Assembly: GCF_006345805.1 (NCBI RefSeq)
Contig: NW_021824029.1
Location: forward strand, 1 to 19,678
Direction of reading: 5' to 3'
Length of the DNA: 19,678 bases
Source: Octopus sinensis
Lineage: Eukaryota
Below the pieces are notes generated by a model. That model saw only the letters and a program-made list of their open reading frames with translations. It searched no databases and had not been told where the DNA came from. The position numbers were made by a program, and so were the translations under genes. Position 1 is the first letter of the stretch, and every line of letters starts with the position of its first letter. Below, one piece after another: positions 1,512 to 15,244 of this stretch.

Positions 1512-2936
1512 CTATTTATTTTTCGTATCAACGATGTGTTGATGTAATCTGTCCTCCGTGTTACTAAGACGGTGTTCGAGTACACCCACAGTCTACATAG
1601 TTATTTCCATATCCAACCTCTGTCAACATGTCCAATTGTCCTGTTATTCTATCGAGAGCCTGTTTTATATTCAAGACAAATTCAGAAAAATTTTCATCTG
1701 TTTGTCCACCGTTGAGCTGTTTAACATGATTCTGAGGATCTTCATTTCTCGGAAGACTTTGATCCTCCGCAGCTGAACAATAGTCGGTCTCGTATTTTTT
1801 CATATTAGTCTCATTTTCTTTTTCCTGCACTTTTTTAACCGCCAAATCAAAATTGGTTTTCCACAAAAAAAGTTGTTCGTCTGCCCCGCCTGTTGCAAAG
1901 TTTTGGCCGTCACATGAAAACTTGATTGCTGTGACCGAGTCCTTAAAGGTCACGTGTCTCAACAAACTTTGTGACCGTGGATTGTGTAGAAGAGTCTCCC
2001 TTCGATCAAATCTAAAACTTTGGCTGTTCCATCAGAGGAGGCAGTGATTAAATAGTTCCCGGAAGGGTGGAAGGAGATGTCGTTTACTGAGGCATTGTGC
2101 ACTAAAAATAATTTTTAAATAAAAAACCAGCATAGTTTTGAATTAGTTTATAACTACGAATGTCCCAGATCTTGACTGAACCATCGTCAATTCCTCCTCC
2201 AATAAAATACCCCCCAGGATGGAATCTGATTGATGTCCCTCGAGAGTTATCAAGACGGAAAGTCTGGACGGGGTCTTTGATAGCTCGATCCCACAGACGG
2301 ACAGTCTTGTCGTCACTTACAGAAGCAAAACTACGGCTGTCTGGCGAAAAACTTAAATTTGTCAAAACTCATTACCTCGCTGACCTAACCCAATTCGAAT
2401 GATGAATGTACGAGGATTGGAATCTCTGTCTGTGAGTTGTCCATATCTGTAAGAAGAACTCCTAGCTTATATACCTTAACTGACTTGTCGTCAGAACATG
2501 TGATAAAGCTTTGCCCGTCGTGACTAAATTCGACATGTCGGACAGCAGCAGTGTGCCCGACGAAGCTTGTACTTTCACCTTTCCTACTAATGATATGATC
2601 GAGGTATACGCTGAAGGAATCCACAGTCTTACGGTCTTGTCCTTCGAAGAAGAGGCCAACAATGCTCCTGACGGAGAGAAGGAGACGCAAGTCGTGGAAT
2701 CCTTAATAATCAGTCAATTTTAATACTTTGTGCCCAGCAAGTCTTATCACGTGTAGACGAGGATAGATTTTCCATAAAATTACTGCGGAGTCCAACGATG
2801 AGGAGGCAAGTTGTTTTCCATTTACATTAAAGTCAATTCCAGTTATTGTATCTCGATGTCCTGACAAACTTTGTTGTAAAGAGGGCGAGGACTCATCCTT
2901 CCAAATAATCTAATTAATTACTTGCACTGTCTTCAT
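1512..2936 (-). CDS. POC1: POC1 centriolar WD40-repeat protein, 9 exons, 407 aa, intact
   Basis: The spliced frame is open from ATG 2936 to TAG 1512. Introns (all GT-AG): 2898-2921, 2702-2726, 2587-2609, 2447-2474, 2352-2375, 2102-2127, 1942-1967, 1593-1617 (23-28 nt). Seven WD repeats ([119 protein letters not shown]). C-terminal POC1 coiled coil [22 protein letters not shown]. Confidence 0.93.
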
Positions 2937-3149: not shown

Positions 3150-3935
3150 GGTAGGAGGGCTGGTTTGGTACGGAGAAAGACTACTTTATCAAACAGTTAA
3201 ACAAGACAAGACGTATCGCATTGAAACTGCCTTACAGAGTACAACTTGACAGAAGGCTTGAAGACTTGCAAGAGTCCTATCCGGATGGTCCTGGAGAAAG
3301 GTTGTTTTGAGTAATTATAATTGGATTGGCATGGAAGGAGACACTTCGGTGCTTTTTAAATCTTAATCAGCTGCCAAATTGAAGAGCCTGTGGATGCGAT
3401 GACGTATACGATTTTTTCTTGAAAAAGTTTACTACGGTCCACGATGACCTTTGTAAGAAAGTCGCGAATATCATATATGGAAAGTACACATCTGGTGAGT
3501 GGTTCTACACAGGGATTACCCATCTTACTCCCAAAAATAAAATTTGTGACTCACCCAAGAACCTGAGGCCGATTACTTGCATGTCAAATCCATATAAACT
3601 TGTAACAAAATGTGTGAACAGAAAATTGACGAACTACATTGAAGCATACAATTTGATCAGCGACAAGAAGAATGTGCCAAGGAGCCAAAGAGCAGACATT
3701 GCCCAACCAATGTGTCCATCAACAAAATGGGAATAATTTGCCTTCTGCCTGGATTAATGTAAAGAAGGCTTTTGACTTACAATCACGAGTTTCTGTATCA
3801 AGTCCTCGATAACTCCGGCCTTCCCCATTGGATTGTGGATTTATCAAGGAAATTGTCACGAAATGGAAGATCAAGCTGAGATTTAATCAAAAAGATTGGT
3901 GAAGTGAAAATGGGAAGAGGGATCTTGCAGGATGT
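3150..3935 (+). mobile_element. Degenerate R4/Dong-clade non-LTR retrotransposon RT remnant
   Basis: WFYTGITHLTPK..SPKNLRPITCMSNPYKLVTKCV (track ORF 3419..3736), preceded by a degraded LPNW.SCGCD motif and followed by W.NVKKAFD and GILQ(G)D. Frameshifts and stops are present; truncated at ~3935. Confidence 0.8.
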
Positions 3936-4222
3936 ATCCTACAAATTTGTCTTTTTAATTGAACTGGATTTTTTACAGATAAAAACAATACATTTGAATA
4001 ATTAAAATGAGCAATTTTTTAATCTTTTTTGATAGATATTTTTTAATGCCTCATTTTATTCGGCATATTTTTTTAAGAATTAAAAAAGTCAATTTTTAGT
4101 ACAAAAATATAGGTTCGTTCAAATTTTAAAGTGAGTTATGCTTTAATTTTTCAAAAAAATAATTAAAAGTCAAAATACTTCATATTTTATGGGTAAAAAC
4201 GTAAAATACTAAAATTTATTAA

Positions 4223-4252
4223 GTGGTTCCATGACTTTTTGAGCCAACTGTA
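4223..4252 (-). repeat. Probable Tc1/mariner-type terminal inverted repeat with flanking TA (solo end)
   Basis: The reverse complement reads TA-CAGTTGGCTCAAAAAGTCATGGAACCAC, similar to Tc1-family termini (TA-CAGT....CAAAAGT..TGGA.CAC). The partner TIR was not found in the window. Confidence 0.4.
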
Positions 4253-4529
4253 ATGACGACACGAGGGTTCTAAATACAGCGTTGATAGAGAGAATGTCAC
4301 GTACAAACTGGTGTCTGGTGACTCAGAAGCAGTAAGGCAAAGAGAGTTGTCAGACATTCCCACTCACATGTTCTTCGGGATGTGTTTTATGGGTGGAACA
4401 GATGGGTTTAATGGTTAAAAAGGAGGAGACATGGGCGTCTTCAGCATTTATTGTGTATGGCAAAGTACCCATTTTTTAATAAAGTAGTCTCTCATCAATT
4501 GGACGTCAACTCATTCCTCTTCAAACTGT

Positions 4530-5230
4530 CCTGCTTTCGAAGTTCTTTGAAAATTCCCCTTCGATTCCAAAGTCAGCAAGGATACAAGTTTCCAAATGTC
4601 TTACTTCCTTCATCAACGTCTCACGTCTAATAGTTGGGAAGCATGACCTCGTATAATCAGTTTTGCCCCACTGGCGCACGGAGCCCCTATCCGCACTGGG
4701 AAAATCCACATCCTCTCGCAGAATTGATTAAAGAGAACATCAACAGAATCTCTTCGCACCCAATAACAACCTTGCCTCATGTTTATCGCAAACATTCCCA
4801 AAATAACAAAAGAACACCTTACAGGAGGACACCCTGAATGATCGTGTTTGTGTCAAACTAGCCGTGGGTGACGTCCGGGCTGCTATTCGCAGTCTCAAAC
4901 GACGACAATTTCCAAATTGAACAATATTATTCCAAGCCCACTTGACCACCTATTTAAGGAAGGTGGAAAGGTCTTCTTAGCCATTCAACAGGACCAACTG
5001 TCAAAAGACCAAGACTTTAGCAACCAGAAGCGCATCACCCCGATTCAATTACTTACAGATGTTCCCCCCGTCCGTTCCGCACTTGGGTTGGGTCCAGAGT
5101 CCAACATCGGGAAAAGCTAAGAAAGCTTGCTTTGCTCACTCCACAAAATCATCGTATTCTCACGGCCCGGATAAAATCCGGTCAGTCTATTAAAAAACTT
5201 TGACGTTGAAAAAGTCAGGTTTCTAACATC
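4530..5230 (+). mobile_element. Decayed CRE-clade non-LTR ORF, region N-terminal to RT
   Basis: Fragmented translation IPKSARIQVSKCLTSFIN...SNSWEA, RVCVKLAVGDVRAAIRSL and a GPD.IR motif, typical of the pre-RT region of CRE-type ORFs. Many disruptions. Confidence 0.6.
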
Positions 5231-5289
5231 TATCATCACTATTCAATCAACAACAATGTGATTCCGTCAATATGAAAACAGGCCCTAAT

Positions 5290-5430
5290 AAGACCGATAC
5301 TGAAGCCTGGATGCTAAGAGGAGACCCGACATCTTTCAGTCCGATTTCTCTGTTATGTTTGTTTCCCAGCAGAGCTTGGAAAATGGTTCCTCACTGTGAA
5401 TACAACCAAAACGGAAATCACGGAAGTTCG
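5290..5430 (+). mobile_element. Possible scrap of an APE-type (Jockey/I-like) RT
   Basis: ILKPG...DPTSFSPISLL resembles the RT-proximal IPKPG...P.SYRPISLL motif. Very short and degraded. Confidence 0.3.
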
Positions 5431-5551
5431 ATGTCAAAAATTTTAATTAAATCGGAAAAAGTCTATAGTCGGGATGGACAGGATTAAAAAATTAATTATT
5501 TTCGTAGTTGATAAATCAATAATAAGATTGTTTGAAGTTTATAGATAAATT

Positions 5552-6868
5552 TTTTTTTTTTTATTTTACAAACGAAAAGAGTTAAAATGCGCAGCGGATC
5601 GATGGCAATTCCCGAGTCTGATCGACTCGTTGGGATCTTTCGTGGCAACCACGAGCTTAGATCCAAGGCGGCGGAGAAACGATAGCGTCTGCGGCCGATG
5701 ACTCCAGAGGTTTCCACCGCGACTGCAGTGAATTGGTGATTCTTTGCCAGGACCCGGTACTTCTTCTGTTTTGTTAGTTCCGCCTGCTTTGCAACTGAGC
5801 CCGGTTCCGAAGCGGAGACAATTAGATTCTTGGCGGAGAAAATGTCGGAACAGGTGGCGTCCCGATAAGGCATTTCCCTTTTTCAACGGGAAGATTGACA
5901 TGCCATCCGGGCGCTTACCGTCGCCTCTGTCGAGCCCGACTGGTTCGAGCTCATTAGGAAACCCCGCCGTCGTTAGGGCACGGCTCACGGTGTCGTTGAT
6001 GGCGGCGTGTCGTGTGAAACGTCCGGCACTACGTGAGCAGGAGAGGGGATGATGGCCAAATGAGTCCACTCTCAAACCGCAGCGGCACTGGTGGTGTTCT
6101 GCAAATGGGAAGTCCGAGGCGGAGAGAGACGGAAATCCTTACACAGTCGTTGTCCATTAAGGTGCCGATTGACGCCATAGGGATTGCTGTAAGCCATACA
6201 CCAGAATATGGTTGCGAGGCGGCCAATAAGCAAGCCAAGCGATGTTGATTGAGTTTCGGCTTGAGCTGTTTATCTTGTGGTCGCAGAGGATCCGGTCCCA
6301 TTGGCCTTGAGCGTGTGTATTCTCCGGGATTTCCAGAGACATCCCTTGCCAGCAACTTTCTGCGGCGACCGACTCTGTGTTCATAGATGATTCGGTTACG
6401 GATTGGAGAATCTCCTGGACCAGATCGTTTGTCGCATTAACTGAAGATAAGTACGCCGGGATAGAAAGGTCGACAGATGATCGGATACCAATACCGCCAT
6501 GGCTTATAGGAAGGGTGGCCTGTTGCCAACCGATCTCATCGAGGGTAATATTGCAAATGGACTCCAAGCTGGATTTAAGCGAAAAATCAAATGATTCGAG
6601 AGCCCTCAGGTTAAAGAAACATGGGGCACTTCTGAGGATAAATAGAAGCTTTGGAATTGCAAAACAGTTGCGTAGGAAAAACAGGCCGGAATGGGAATCG
6701 ATTTTTGCTAGTTTGTTAGAAATTGCCACTAGCGAGGATGTTTAAGCATATAGGGACGATTCAACACCCAGATTAGATATAGGGGACCCTAAGATTTTCA
6801 AATTTTCGATCAAGGTCCTGCGGATATTTGGAAGGACATTCGAGAACGTATTAAATACAGAGGTAAAA
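5552..6868 (-). pseudogene. Non-inverted 3' part of the CRE ORF: thumb, zinc knuckle and restriction-like endonuclease
   Basis: [137 protein letters not shown]. Several frameshifts and an apparent small deletion near the C-terminus. Confidence 0.88.
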
Positions 6869-7568
6869 GGAAGAAAAAAGGCGGGATCCGCCCTATTGCT
6901 GTTGGTACATTTTTTCGCCGTCTAGCTTCCAAAGTAGCCTGTAGACAAGTTACCAAGTCTTTGGGTCAGGAACTACGCCCGTTTCAGTTGGGCGTCGGTG
7001 TCCGCGGCGGCTGTGAAGCTGCTGTCCATGCTGCAAGAAAGTTTATTTCCGCCTCAACCGAAAGGCCGGATAACGCCTCTGTACTCGTGAAGCTAGACTT
7101 GACAAATGCCTTCAACAGTCTTCGTCGGGACTGTATTCTCGAAACTTGCTACCGCCGTGCTCCCTCAATTGCCCGCTTGGTATCTATGGCTTACTCCAAG
7201 CCAAGCCTTCTTATTGCCGATGACCAAATCCTACATTCCAGCAACGGTGTTCAACAGGGCGACCCACTTGGCCCGTTGCTTTTTGCCCTGACGATCGATC
7301 CTGTTGTTCGGAACATCTCATCTCGTTTCAATGTATGGTACCTGGACGACGCTACTATCGGAGGTCCGGTAGCTTCTGTCCTTAAAGATTGGAAAATCTG
7401 ATCCCCTCCCTTAATTCTCTTGGCCTATCCATCAATCCACTCAAATCCGAAATTGCCAATATTGGCTTTACCCCAGAAGATTTTACCTCTGTATTTAATA
7501 CGTTCTCGAATGTCCTTCCAAATATCCGCAAGACCTTGATCGAAAATTTGAAAATCTTAGGGTCCCCT
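6781..7568. repeat. 88-bp inverted duplication (arms 6781-6868 and 7481-7568)
   Basis: 7481-7568 is the reverse complement of 6781-6868 with one mismatch (7531 vs 6818). Confidence 0.95.
6869..7567 (+). pseudogene. Inverted CRE reverse transcriptase core
   Basis: KKGGIRPIAVGTFFRRLASK, FQLGVGVRGGCEAAVHAAR, KLDLTNAFNSL, GVQQGDPLGPLLF, WYLDDATIGG, LGLSINPLKSEI. One frameshift at ~7390. Confidence 0.9.
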
Positions 7569-7669
7569 TATAGATAAATTGATAGATTAACATTAATTGA
7601 AGGTCAGTGTAATCATTTGGCCCATGTCACATAATACACCATTTTATTCAGGAAATCAATAAATTAATT

Positions 7670-7960
7670 TATGACGACCAAGAAATTGATTTTCAAGAAC
7701 AGTTGATCGAAGTACGAAATTCGCAGTTTCGCAAGTTGACATTTAATTTGCATTCGATTATGAAATTCTGTATTTCTGTTATTAATGAATATCCAATCTT
7801 AAGTAAAAATGCACTGGAAGTGATAGTTCACTTTCCAACCATTTATTTATGTGAAATGGAAAAGTCTTGTTATTCTGACTAAACTGCTTTGAATTAAAAT
7901 GATCCCGATTCAAACGGAGGTTAAACTGCAAACATATTTATAGATTATTGAATTTTCATA
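7670..7960 (+). mobile_element. hAT (Buster/Charlie, ZBED8-like) transposase C-terminal dimerization-domain remnant
   Basis: QEQLIEVRNS ... EYPILSKNALEVIVHFPTIYLCE matches the Buster-type EYP.LS..A...L.PF.TTYLCE.GFS motif. Degraded downstream. Confidence 0.6.
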
Positions 7961-8697
7961 CAGTAAAATTTAAATAAATATAGAAATCGTCAAGAAATAA
8001 GGTTTTGTAGAAAAGTCAAAAAATTTATTGAATAGTTAAAATGTAAAAAAGATTAAATCATTGCAAAAATAAGACAAATACAATTACAAAATATCAAATA
8101 TTATAAGAAATTCTGTAAGTCAACAATATATTTAATCAATTTTAATACAAAATTAACCATTAATACAAGAAAATAAATTAAACAAATAAAACAATAAGCA
8201 ACAACAAAACAAAATACAAATAATAACGTGTGAATATTTTATTATAATATAATTAAAATTTGTCCTTGAATTTATTTATAATAATCATATAACTATCAAA
8301 ATATATCAAATAATCATATAACTCGGACCACAAGGGTATTTTAAATTTTGAGGATTGTTGGAATCACCTAATATTATCCTAATTAGCTGTTGGTGATTCT
8401 TAGGTTAAATAAATAAAAAAATAAAATAAAACTAACTAGGATTGACGAGTGATGCCGTCATCAGTGATACTACTGCGGAACCGAATGTCTACTTCAGCCA
8501 CACTCGAAAAGAAAAATAGATGTAGCAGAGACACATGTCTTCGTTCGTCTTCCTTTGGATTAGTTAGTTTCCTAATAACATTTTCTCTCTCTTTTTAATC
8601 TTATGTGGCTGGCACAAGCGAGATGTTAACATTCCGTTCTCATCTTGCGGCAGGGCTTCTTGTTGTTGTTAACTATCAAAAAAATAATAGCTTACGA

Positions 8698-8741
8698 GCG
8701 TTGTCATCGCGGTGGCCCGGGTTCGATTCCCGGTCGGGGAG
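8698..8741 (+). pseudogene. 5'-truncated tRNA-Asp(GTC) (3' half only)
   Basis: Anticodon loop TT-GTC-AT (GTC at 8703-8705), T-arm CCGGG-TTCGATT-CCCGG, acceptor 3' strand TCGGGGA plus discriminator G, as in eukaryotic tRNA-Asp. There is no D-arm and no 5' acceptor strand upstream. Confidence 0.7.
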
Positions 8742-8748
8742 TTTTTTT
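8742..8748 (+). terminator. Pol III-type T7 terminator after the tRNA-Asp remnant
   Basis: Seven T immediately 3' of the discriminator base. Confidence 0.6.
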
Positions 8749-8781
8749 GCAACCGTTATTTTATATTCGCTAATTTTTTAA

Positions 8782-9040
8782 ATGAGACGGCCAAAATAAA
8801 AAAATAACAAGAACTCGGACGCCGCTTTATTTTTGCACCAATCGCACTGGAGACATCAGGCATCGCCGGGCCTCTAACCTCGGCCTTTATCAGCGACATC
8901 GGGAGGAAATTGGCCCATAGGACGAAAGAGCCACTCGAGTTTTGTGGCTATTGCAGAGGATATCCATCGCCATTATCCGTGGAAACACGCACGCGGTACT
9001 TACCGCAAGAGGGCGCGTGCTTTAGCCCATCGGAGATTCT
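8782..9040 (+). mobile_element. CRE-clade 3'-end fragment (endonuclease C-terminus)
   Basis: NETAKIKK*QELGRRFIFAPIALETSGIAGPLTSAFISDIGRKLAHRTKEP...WLLQRISIAIIRGNTHAVL. Confidence 0.8.
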
Positions 9041-9391
9041 CTTTTGTTCATTCTTAACTTAATTTGTTCCACTGTTTATATAACAATTTACGTATCAAAC
9101 AAGAAAAATTGAATGAATCTTCCTCTTTTTCACTGCGGAACAGTCGTCTGATATGGTCTTTATTTCTCTCGTTCATGCATAGTGCTTGGAGGTTTATACA
9201 ATATGCATTGTTCAATGACATCGTGAAATGAGCTGTAGATGAGGTCGTATTTCTTTCACTACTCCAACCTGTTCGGGTAGACCGGGGGATAGGCAACATT
9301 CTGATGGGATGACCATTTTCTTTCTCAAGTGTGAAAAAACGATATTATTTGTAATATAAATTAATTTAATGAAATTCCGTCAAATCTAATT

Positions 9392-9959
9392 TTGCACGCT
9401 CTATCGTGTAGACGCAGTGCTGGCCGCATCCCGCGTCACGCGGCTCTTAACGATCTTATCAGGAGAGCCCTGGAAATGGCCGGAATCCCCTCCCTGCTTG
9501 AACCCTCTGGGATCGATCGGGGGGACGGAAAAATGCCTGACGGGATCACTGTGTTTCCCTTCAACAGGGGGAAGCCTCTTGCCTGGGATGCCACGTGTGT
9601 GGACTCTTTCTCGCCTCAGAACCTGCTGATGTCCGCATCCGCCCCTGGATCTATTGTCACAACTGCAAAAAGATGCGGAAGTACTCCTCACTTACGGAGA
9701 AGTTCCAATTCCTTCCATTCGCGGTTGAGACTTCCGGTTCCTTGGGCAGTAAGGCAATCAGCTTCGTTCAGGAGATCGGGTCCCCCATGTCTGCCATCCA
9801 GCGACGGCCGCCCGCAATCAAGATGGTTTTTCGAGCGGATATCCCTTGCGATAGTACGCTCTAATTCTTTCTCGATCGCGTAGGCTTCCCGCCCATGAAG
9901 TTTTTGAACATTTGACCGAATTCTTTTTTAGAATAAAGTGGAACTTTTCAAAAAAAAAA
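9392..9959 (+). mobile_element. CRE-clade 5'-truncated copy (zinc knuckle end, RLE, 3' UTR, AATAAA, poly(A))
   Basis: HALSCRRSAGRIPRHAALNDLIRRAL, EPSGIDRGDGKMPDG, WDATCVDSF, FAVETSGSLG, WFFERISLAIVRSN. AATAAA at ~9932 and an A run at 9951-9959. Confidence 0.85.
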
Positions 9960-10224
9960 TTTGTGTTAATAAATTTTTTAAATGCTTTTTGAAATTCTTT
10001 TATTGCGAGCCAATTTTTATATCCATTTTAAACAGTAGACTTTTCATTGTCGATAGGTTTGCAACCTAAGAGGGACTTTGATTGAAACATTTTTTTAATA
10101 GATACAAAAAGGTCCGAGAGGAAAGACGAGCTCGATCTGCGATCATTACCAGAGAATTGTTAGATATCAGTCAAACGGATAGTTTTCAGAGATTCAGAGA
10201 TTCTCTGTCTCAACAAGAGGATTC

Positions 10225-11020
10225 GCATTTGGATTCGCGTGCATCGCCGATAAGGACCAAGTGTCTGTGTCCCAGATCAGGCATTTGCCATTTCGGAATG
10301 GGAAGGTTGTCATCCCATCGGGGCCTTTGCCGTCTCCCCTGTCCAGACCGACTGGTTCGAGTACATTTGGGAAACCGCCAGCATTGAGTGCTCTTGAGAT
10401 GAAGTCGTTGAGTGCTTCGTGAGTGCTCCGGCGGCACGAGAAGGCGGCAGATGGCAAGTCCCAATCGGAGAGCAACTCTAATCGGGAGGGTTCGTCATCC
10501 AACAACGAGCCCGTTGATGCCCACGGAAAGGCTCGAGCCAGGAGCCACTTGATTTATGTTCTGCGGAAAGCAAGCACGCCAGGTGTTGTTGGTCCAATAA
10601 GCGCTGTAGCTTGGTGACGGAGTGTGCTGCCCAGATCTCGTCCAGTCCCTCTGTCTGCACATCTCAGAAAAGTTGCCAGCTTGGCGGCGGTCCAAAATTT
10701 TTGCAGGTTATCAGCCGGTAAGTCCAGGGAAAGTTCGTTGAAGGAGTAGAACTTCTTGGACAAGCTGACGGCTTCTGGAAACTGAGGAGAAATGCGTATG
10801 CGGCGCCAGGTCTTTGGAGACCGATCCCTCCAAACCTGACGGGAAGTTTGTCTTCGTCCAACTGATTTCGTCGAAGGCGATGTTCAGAACTGCTTCCGTG
10901 GACGATTTTAGGGAGGTTTTTTAGGATGGGAGTAGAATGGCAGGCAGCTGAGCGTGTATAGCCGTTTTGAAATGTTCACACTGCTTTTCATGGGGGAAAG
11001 CGATGTGCGGGTCCAGTGAG
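10225..11020 (-). mobile_element. Heavily deleted CRE-clade fragment
   Basis: [76 protein letters not shown]. Internal deletions and frameshifts. Confidence 0.8.
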
Positions 11021-11614
11021 AAAATGGTTAAATTATTATTATTTTATTAATTATTAGACTTTTTCAGAGAAGATGGTTATTTTTACTTTAAAATGCTATT
11101 TGGTATCCGGGGTGACGAATTTTCTGATATCGAAAAGAAAAATCATTATTAAAAAAAACATAACGACCCTCCCAATTGAACACATCTATCTACTATTCTA
11201 GTAATGCCTGTGGACTAACTAATTTAAATTATTTTATTTATTTTAACAATAGTTATTTTTATTTATTGTTTTTGAACCGAAAAGATGTAACTTTATTAAC
11301 CTAAAAACTAATAAAAATTAAATAAATAAACAATAAAAACACTAAAACTGTTTTTATACGTGAAATTACACAATTCTAAAAATCTTTATTTGAGAAAAAG
11401 ATATTTTTTTGAAGATTTATTAATATTCAAAAAATGAAAAAAAAGAATCACACAGCTCCAAGGAATAGAATCGCATGGCCTTTCCTCCATCTTCACTTAG
11501 TAAACCAATGCTAAGAAGCCAGGAATAAAGACAATATAACCCACGTGATCTGTCTAGAATAACTAGATTTCTCTAATTCAAAAAACCACACAAAAGTGTT
11601 AAAATAATTTAAAA

Positions 11615-12229
11615 TTAAAAAAAATTAGGCGGGTTAAAAATAGAGCTAATTGGCTGGAAATCCGCAGGCGGCCCATCTCGCACGATCAGTCGCTGCAGAC
11701 CAGTGCCATGTTGACCCACACACTCATAGTACTTACAGTCACTCTCGTATGGCGGGAAAAGTATGTCAAAAAACGCACAAGGACCATTAATGGCCGACAA
11801 TTGATGAATGTTCCCAAAATTTGGAGACAAAGTGAGACAACTTTTGGTCTCAGATGTGATCTCTCCCTCCAATTCCCGCCTGCAGATGATCTCAGAGGGT
11901 GACCTTCCCTCCTTGACGGGGGTGAAGGTCTCGACCTTGGCACATCCTTCAATGATCTTTACAAATCCGTTCATTTGGTGGTGGTCGTGGAGTGGGATTC
12001 GGGCATTTTCTGCCAGGATGACTATGAAGGCCATTATTTTAGTATCCTCGAATATTTGGAGGAAGATTTGTCGATATTTGTCCAGGTCGTAATCACTGCA
12101 GGCCGTGAAATTCAGATCGGACTTTTGAACACGGGAAAATAGGTTTTTTAGTTCTTGAAAATCTGATTTTTTGTTTGATGATAAAATGCATTTATAAGCT
12201 GCTTTTCCAATCAGCTGTAAAAGACTCAT
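11615..12229 (-). CDS. ADO: 2-aminoethanethiol (cysteamine) dioxygenase, PCO/ADO family, 204 aa, intronless
   Basis: Cupin motifs IPLHDHHQMNGFVKIIEG, GNIHQLSAINGPCAFFDILFPPY and DCKYY match the ADO/plant cysteine oxidase consensus (HDH...H iron ligands, PPY, C.YY). Open frame of typical size. Confidence 0.9.
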   Translation of the reverse strand: MSLLQLIGKAAYKCILSSNKKSDFQELKNLFSRVQKSDLNFTACSDYDLDKYRQIFLQIFEDTKIMAFIVILAENARIPLHDHHQMNGFVKIIEGCAKVETFTPVKEGRSPSEIICRRELEGEITSETKSCLTLSPNFGNIHQLSAINGPCAFFDILFPPYESDCKYYECVGQHGTGLQRLIVRDGPPADFQPISSIFNPPNFF

Positions 12230-12523
12230 ATCAACAAGAATTTACAACCAAATTCAAATCAGTTTATTATTTTATTTAAATAAATATTTGTTTAATTTAT
12301 TAATAAAAACTGCATTTTATCAAATAATAAAAATTTCTTTAAAAAAAAAATTTATAAACCAAGATCGTGCTAAATCTAGTCATTGAAAATGTCTTGTTCG
12401 GTGGCAGTTTTAATAAGACAGTTTTTAGCTTAAATTGATTTTAGATAAAATATTTATTTAAAATTCAAATAAAATTAATAATTATTATTTTAATCATAAT
12501 ATATTAACAAGTTCCTGGTGGTG
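12230..12523. promoter_or_regulatory. Short AT-rich divergent intergenic spacer (probable bidirectional promoter for ADO and the MAP4K gene)
   Basis: 294 bp of very AT-rich sequence between head-to-head start codons (12229 and 12524). No specific motif assigned. Confidence 0.5.

Positions 12524-15244
<2,721 letters not shown>

Follow-up and report, generated by a model that had tools for sequence, protein, structure and literature searches.

A 5′-inverted insertion with the geometry of twin priming in an octopus LINE of the restriction-like endonuclease type

A 2016-bp insert at positions 5552-7567 of the window (the whole 19.7-kb stretch of octopus DNA that was analysed) consists of two oppositely oriented pieces of a non-LTR retrotransposon, with an exact 13-bp target-site duplication (TSD) on both sides. 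The insert most probably arose in one retrotransposition event in which both nicked target strands served as primers, that is, by twin priming. Twin priming is said to have been described by Ostertag and Kazazian in 2001 for the 5′ inversions of mammalian LINE-1 (L1). The element found here is a young octopus non-LTR retrotransposon with the domain order PHD finger, reverse transcriptase (RT), CCHC motif and restriction-like endonuclease (RLE). The conclusion that the locus represents a known mechanism in a new LINE group, as a natural case of twin priming by a cephalopod RLE-type LINE, is well supported by the evidence set out below.

The initial annotation of this DNA had described a twin-priming geometry, and we recover it in the same order: TSD, inverted piece with its RNA-3′ end at the flank, head-to-head junction, direct piece, A-tail and TSD (Table 1). 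The two TSD copies are exact, as first described. The 3′ ORF that had been drawn on the minus strand up to 6868 comprises the RT thumb, CCHC motif and nuclease followed by a short 3′ UTR, interrupted by indels, and the upstream RT core that had been placed on the plus strand matches Pfam RVT_1 (E 5.8e-12). The poly(A) tract reported for the left end is present but, at 11 A, is slightly shorter than had been implied; it amounts to 13 A with the final TT of the TSD included. Compared with two O. sinensis copies, the start of the tail is shifted about 25-30 nt upstream within the 3′ UTR.

Table 1. Features of the inverted insertion and its target site, in window coordinates.
Feature	Position	Strand	Remarks
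Left TSD copy, TTATAGATAAATT	5539..5551	+	3′ end ..AAATT-3′ on + strand, putative first-strand primer
A-tail, 11 A on - strand (T-run on +)	5552..5562	-	
Non-inverted (direct) 3′ piece: RT thumb, CCHC, restriction-like endonuclease, stop codon, short 3′ UTR	5563..6868	-	
CCHC motif and PD-(D/E)xK restriction-like endonuclease coding region, frameshifted	5670..6105	-	profile 780-925
88-nt overlap arm in direct piece	6781..6868	-	reference L001 6294-6381
Internal head-to-head junction, 5′ end of direct piece against 5′ end of inverted piece	6868..6869		
Inverted 5′ piece: RT core, motifs 1 to about 7	6869..7567	+	RVT_1; profile 320-550
88-nt overlap arm in inverted piece	7481..7568	+	last base T 7568 common to TSD
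Right TSD copy	7568..7580	+	complement ..CTATAA-3′ on - strand, putative second primer

The single TSD brackets the entire composite, with both pieces inside it. With at most one mismatch allowed, the 13-mer has three matches in the whole window compared with 0.12 expected from shuffles, and none of 200 shuffles of the window reaches three. The third match is a one-mismatch site at 8269-8281. The target is AT-rich intergenic DNA downstream of an ADO gene. An ARAGORN scan of the window gave no tRNA. The inverted piece lacks a 3′ end, an A-tail and a TSD of its own, and it adjoins the flanking TSD with its RNA-3′-most base. The direct piece, which maps to profile positions 523-925, is damaged by about four 1-nt indels, a 30-bp deletion and one stop.

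We mapped both pieces onto a same-family copy in O. sinensis contig VCDQ01012976.1 (L001), which spans the whole ORF (989 codons, interrupted by one stop and by a short stretch that is out of frame). Window 6868-7568 on the plus strand aligns to L001 5683-6381 with 97.6% identity, and window 5555-6868 on the minus strand aligns to L001 6294-7642 with 95.4% identity including indels. The two pieces are colinear, adjacent segments of one L001 copy that overlap by 88 nt. Read on the element sense strand in reference coordinates, the order is TSD, antisense 6381 to 5683, sense 6294 to the tail, TSD. Substitution divergence from L001 is 1.29% for the inverted piece and 1.90% for the direct piece (Fisher p = 0.37). 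Because these divergences are indistinguishable, the pieces belong to one subfamily and are not two insertions. The initial annotation had named an origin of the two segments in different subfamilies as a finding that would speak against a single event; instead, both map to L001 and have diverged from it to a similar extent.

The same mapping bears on cDNA snap-back, in which the first cDNA folds back at its 3′ end and serves as its own template before being joined to the upstream target. Snap-back junctions with antisense sequence have been documented for R2-family proteins in human cells (PMC11371274), but snap-back re-copies only first-cDNA sequence, whereas 611 of the 699 nt of the inverted piece lie upstream of the direct piece (reference 5683-6293, compared with a direct-piece start at 6294). 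Since most of the inverted piece consists of unique upstream sequence, its template was RNA rather than the cDNA. Simple snap-back is refuted by the reference mapping (88 of 699 nt shared) unless a large secondary deletion is added, and we give it almost no credence as an explanation of this locus.

The overlapping arms form an 88-nt inverted repeat in which 87 of 88 positions are identical, in agreement with the overlap first described; the mismatch is G/A at arm position 51. Base 6868 (A) fits both pieces, giving 1 nt of microhomology at the internal junction, and base 7568 (T) fits both the element and the TSD, giving 1 nt at the second priming site. The short TATA match that had been proposed at this second site needs correction: it is 4 nt long but out of register by 1 nt, and its use would predict three C before the TSD, compared with the four observed; the in-register homology is a single base.

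An empty site with a single 13-mer, which the initial annotation had suggested looking for, is present between matching flanks at the orthologous locus. We found the orthologue by following the ADO ORF of the window to O. sinensis protein P0121 and from there to locus L002, the flanks of which differ from those of the window by 1.26% substitutions overall. Window 5486-5551 aligns to L002 12293-12216 and window 7568-8243 aligns to L002 12228-11507, and the two flank alignments have exactly 13 positions in common, L002 12216-12228. The sequence here is GAAGA-TTATCGATAAATT-GATAGATTAAC, with one target copy (TTATCGATAAATT, carrying one substitution) and without the element. Since the 13-mer occurs once at L002, where the element is lacking, the 2016-bp composite entered as one event. 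The insertion, absent from the O. sinensis assembly at L002, may be lineage-specific or polymorphic.

The structure could in principle also have been reached in two steps, either by a normal 5′-truncated insertion followed by a local inversion with duplication or by two independent insertions at the same site. A later rearrangement would fit a neighbourhood that is structurally unstable, in that several blocks of 0.1-3 kb around the locus differ between the two octopus assemblies. However, a later inversion presupposes a breakpoint that coincides exactly with the element/TSD boundary, together with an 88-bp inverted duplication, and a second insertion is hard to reconcile with a plus-strand piece that has no 3′ end, A-tail or TSD. 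With one TSD around both pieces, and both pieces missing in the empty site, we regard either of these histories as very improbable.

A family-profile scan of ten octopus loci (about 210 kb) revealed a second composite with the same geometry, from a related family, in O. sinensis VCDQ01013100.1 (L005). Its minus-strand piece (9573-9797, profile 152-230) is followed directly on the right by a plus-strand copy that extends from 9842 (profile 245 onward) to the 3′ end at 12050. The composite is bracketed by a 9-bp TSD, ATTGGTGAG, at 9564-9572 and 12051-12059, and these are the only matches to this sequence in L005, compared with 0.15 expected. The break positions lie about 0-40 nt apart in full-length relatives, which makes L005 a gap-type version of the geometry. 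The L005 family is about 50% identical at the protein level to the window family, the composite has no A-tail, and its target is unrelated to that of the window. We consider L005 a probable second twin-primed example, its colinearity being based on protein-level mapping to relatives, with no same-family reference among the loci compared.

The profile scan of the ten loci found no further head-to-head pairs beyond the window and L005. Oppositely oriented copies at L003 (8696-9031 on the minus strand, 9232 on the plus strand) and L008 (8709-8849 on the minus strand, 9047 on the plus strand) are independent neighbours, the plus copy in each case spanning from near the 5′ end to the 3′ end. Inverted copies account for two of the roughly 25-30 insertions seen, a count that does not amount to an estimate of their rate.

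The second locus is also relevant to the possibility that the window structure is an assembly artefact caused by a chimeric or fold-back long read. The 6868/6869 junction is known from one assembly, and both octopus assemblies contain many 1-nt indels, with about 5 gap openings per kb, a density that suggests long-read data with imperfect polishing. However, a fold-back chimera yields a perfect palindrome of adjacent sequence, whereas the repeat here is limited to 88 nt and the other 611 nt of the inverted piece are unique sequence from further upstream in the element. Nor would assembly error produce an exact TSD corresponding to a single-copy empty site, and the same geometry occurs at L005 in a different assembly. 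We therefore judge an artefact to be exceedingly unlikely.

A different origin would be ordinary single-primer target-primed reverse transcription of the transcript of a source copy in which the 5′ inversion was already present. The window sequence holds nothing against a pre-existing composite of this kind, and the frameshifts and 30-bp deletion of the window copy relative to L001 may point to a defective RNA mobilized in trans. The 88-nt arms nevertheless differ at one site, which leaves little time for a separate lineage, and the outer end of the inverted piece would coincide with the RNA 5′ end or truncation point only by chance. No other copy with the 6868/6869 junction was found in the ten octopus loci, and a composite at the source would itself have required twin priming. 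This origin is quite improbable, and we interpret the insertion below as the product of twin priming at the window locus.

The stitched translation matches O. sinensis protein P0001 (94% identity) and has many relatives at 40-65% identity, from marine samples, Lepidoptera and a barnacle, with no match outside LINE-like proteins. Full-length relatives are about 970-1060 aa long. In them a PHD-type zinc finger at the N-terminus is followed by an RT and by a conserved C-terminal block, in which the motifs C-x-C...H...C, RH, E, RPDG, WD-T and K...Y are invariant. In the PDB, the N-terminus has matches to PHD fingers. None of the relatives has a recorded APE domain, the full-length ones showing only RVT_1 and a weak PHD finger.

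A profile built from 35 relatives identified R2 proteins as the best match among solved structures (E 1.6e-20). This profile aligns the CCHC, RHN, E, KPD, D-T and K motifs with the R2 nuclease, although this stretch alone is not significant. A single-sequence phmmer search of the PDB matched R2 in the RT only, and a Pfam search gave no family for the nuclease region. We also modelled the last 243 residues with AlphaFold2 (pLDDT 89.8). The top seven PDB matches to this model are all R2 proteins (E 1e-5 to 7e-4, TM 0.52-0.59); weak matches to other PD-(D/E)xK nucleases follow, and significance is reached for R2 only. The R2-like predicted fold, together with the lack of a recorded APE domain, bears out the restriction-like endonuclease proposed from the sequence, and at the level of modelled structure the element is confirmed as RLE-type. 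The proposal that such an element used the two-primer mechanism known from L1 is likewise supported, by the colinearity of the pieces, the empty site, the geometry and the R2-like predicted fold.

We interpret the insertion according to the twin-priming model as summarised in PMC2912911 and PMC12016303. The cuts in the two strands of the target, TTATAGATAAATT, were staggered by 13 nt. The first nick would lie at AAATT^G on the plus strand, with the 3′ end ...AAATT annealing to the A-rich 3′ end of the RNA, and the resulting cDNA 1 would run from the tail up to reference position 6294. The second nick would lie 13 nt away on the minus strand, where the end ...CTATAA would anneal internally at 6381 through 1 nt of homology and prime cDNA 2, running from 6381 to reference position 5683. 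The two cDNA 3′ ends would then be joined through the 1-nt microhomology at 6868/6869, followed by repair fill-in. RTs of the R2 type have strong strand-displacing activity. The 88 nt present in both cDNAs could have arisen if cDNA 1 displaced cDNA 2 on a single RNA, or if two same-family RNAs were used. Around the two same-family copies in L001 we found no repeat of at least 9 bp; with these copies lacking a clear TSD, the 13-nt stagger is not established as a family norm.

Some features count against twin priming. Microhomology amounts to 1 nt at each junction, which leaves annealing of the second primer putative, and the 88-nt overlap is well beyond the human L1 range and requires either strand displacement or a second RNA. 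In addition, current models for R2 place cleavage of the second strand after first-strand synthesis (PMC6895275).

The geometry of the octopus insertion is identical to that of mammalian L1 twin priming, from the TSD through the inverted and direct pieces to the A-tail and second TSD. The 13-bp TSD falls within the 10-20 bp range of L1 inversions (PMC4245944), and in both systems there is little microhomology at the junctions. The differences are that the octopus element encodes a restriction-like endonuclease at the C-terminus and lacks an APE domain, that the host is a cephalopod, and that the first nick is at AAATT^G, compared with TTTT^A in L1. The overlap also differs, at 88 nt compared with a median of 12 nt (quartiles 4-17) in human L1 (PMC12016303). 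Yamaguchi et al. suggested that second priming requires a long 3′ overhang (PMC4245944).

Other systems share some of these properties. The snap-back junctions observed with PRINT (PMC11371274) resemble the octopus insertion in involving an RLE-type LINE protein and in joining antisense element sequence to the upstream target, but they duplicate the first cDNA, whereas the octopus inverted piece is mostly unique upstream sequence. A single 5′-inverted insert of Nimb-2_DR in chicken DT40 cells is a rare case outside L1, and the TSDs of this element peak at about 12 bp (PMC4245944). Nimb-2_DR, however, is an APE-type LINE studied in cultured cells, whereas the octopus insertion is a natural germline insertion of an RLE-type element.

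The R2 4-way junction model (PMC6895275) matches the octopus element in its RT, CCHC and RLE architecture and in the use of a top-strand 3′ OH as primer. In this model, however, the top strand is cut after cDNA synthesis, with a template jump, and primes on the cDNA (PMC6895275), whereas in twin priming of the octopus insertion the top strand must be cut early and prime on the RNA. R2 also mostly leaves small target deletions, in contrast to the 13-bp duplication found here.

Among the matches listed, the literature on twin priming concerns mostly mammalian L1, and in what was searched, the literature that touches on both twin priming and restriction-like endonucleases contains speculation or snap-back only. 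Experimental 5′ inversions come from human L1 in human cells only, plus the one Nimb-2_DR insert (PMC4245944). The octopus insertion suggests that early second-strand nicking and priming on the RNA are possible with the restriction-like endonuclease class. It therefore bears on the order of second-strand cleavage and synthesis in R2-like elements. Such elements are currently being engineered for gene insertion.

It is quite possible, although we advance the idea only tentatively, that twin priming is a general by-product of target-primed reverse transcription and is peculiar neither to the L1 APE nor to mammals. Octopus RLE LINEs would then nick the second strand before first-strand synthesis has passed, the 3′ end so released would prime on the RNA with almost no homology, and the RT would copy tens of nucleotides twice, either through strand displacement or with the second RNA of a dimeric RNP as a further template. 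If true, general twin priming would limit the possible sequence of events in RLE-LINE integration, a matter still under debate for R2. For annotators, the insertion gives reason to seek 5′-inverted copies outside L1; the two loci are a lead for a census, and not a rate.

The CRE-clade placement given in the initial annotation is a tentative label, and the pointers to it are indirect. Within the RLE-type elements, CRE, R2-Hero and R4-Dong types have all been reported in cephalopods (PMC10294476). TSD formation is reported for CRE and R4 elements alike (PMC3636483), and the 13-bp TSD does not separate the two. The classical trypanosomatid CRE members target the spliced-leader gene, whereas the target here is AT-rich intergenic DNA. 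The combination of PHD, SLACS and CRE had no match in the literature searched. The barnacle relative carries the label 'SLACS protein' in one source.

A second RLE-LINE insertion with a 5′ inversion, from a related family, is present at 9564-12059 of another O. sinensis locus, L005 (VCDQ01013100.1). It is flanked by copies of the target-site duplication ATTGGTGAG at 9564-9572 and 12051-12059, between which an inverted N-terminal piece precedes a direct copy, with ~0-40 nt lost between the two break positions. No A-tail was found in this insertion.

A related element at 10235-13613 (− strand) of L001, a locus that also carries copies of the window element's family, has a permuted order on a single strand, with profile positions 456-940 (13613-12182) followed by 6-432 (11565-10235). 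This element, which adjoins the point at which the locus sequence stops (13614), may represent either a rearrangement or a pair of partial copies in tandem. At 9995-20692 of L004, a plus-strand RLE-LINE copy is interrupted at profile position ~772 by a nested block of 8.3 kb containing other LINE fragments.

We also compared the 3′ end of the window copy (5552-5600) with those of both O. sinensis copies (L001 7600-7680 and 1390-1450). In the window copy, the 3′ UTR gives way to the A-tail ~25-30 nt sooner, at a position that coincides with an AATAAA-like tract, which suggests that priming took place within an A-rich internal site or that an alternative polyadenylation site was used.

The surroundings of the window insertion differ between the two octopus assemblies. 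Adjoining its left side, window 3363-5500 shows several more presence/absence differences of 0.1-1.2 kb each relative to 12300-16071 of the orthologous empty-site locus, L002; this region is highly dynamic in structure. It includes an unrelated RT-like ORF that has no Pfam match. To the right, where the window has 3.0 kb of sequence (8243-11266), O. sinensis instead has 540 bp that are unrelated to it (L002 10967-11507). The window stretch is a mosaic of at least four 3′ fragments from other RLE-LINEs, the last two of which are arranged tail-to-tail, and the L002 stretch contains a different RLE fragment, into which the annotated ADO gene model extends. At window ~8690-8747, a T-arm resembling that of a tRNA (GGTTCGATTCCCGG) is followed by a T-run; ARAGORN called no tRNA here, and this is therefore probably a tRNA-derived SINE remnant.

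Coordinates of features in the window and in the L005 insertion
Feature	Sequence	Position	Strand	Pfam match
WD40-repeat exons, host gene	Window	1564-2690	−	
Unrelated RT-like ORF	Window	3419-3736	+	None
RLE-LINE 3′ fragment	Window	8811-9010	+	
RLE-LINE 3′ fragment	Window	9166-9350	+	
RLE-LINE 3′ fragment	Window	9392-9877	+	
RLE-LINE 3′ fragment	Window	10914-10242	−	
Single-exon 2-aminoethanethiol dioxygenase ORF, host gene	Window	11615-12229	−	PCO_ADO, E 2.8e-24
Inverted N-terminal piece	L005	9573-~9797	−	
Direct copy	L005	~9842-12050	+	

Host genes in the window are represented by WD40-repeat exons and by a 2-aminoethanethiol dioxygenase ORF that shares 94% identity with the O. sinensis protein.
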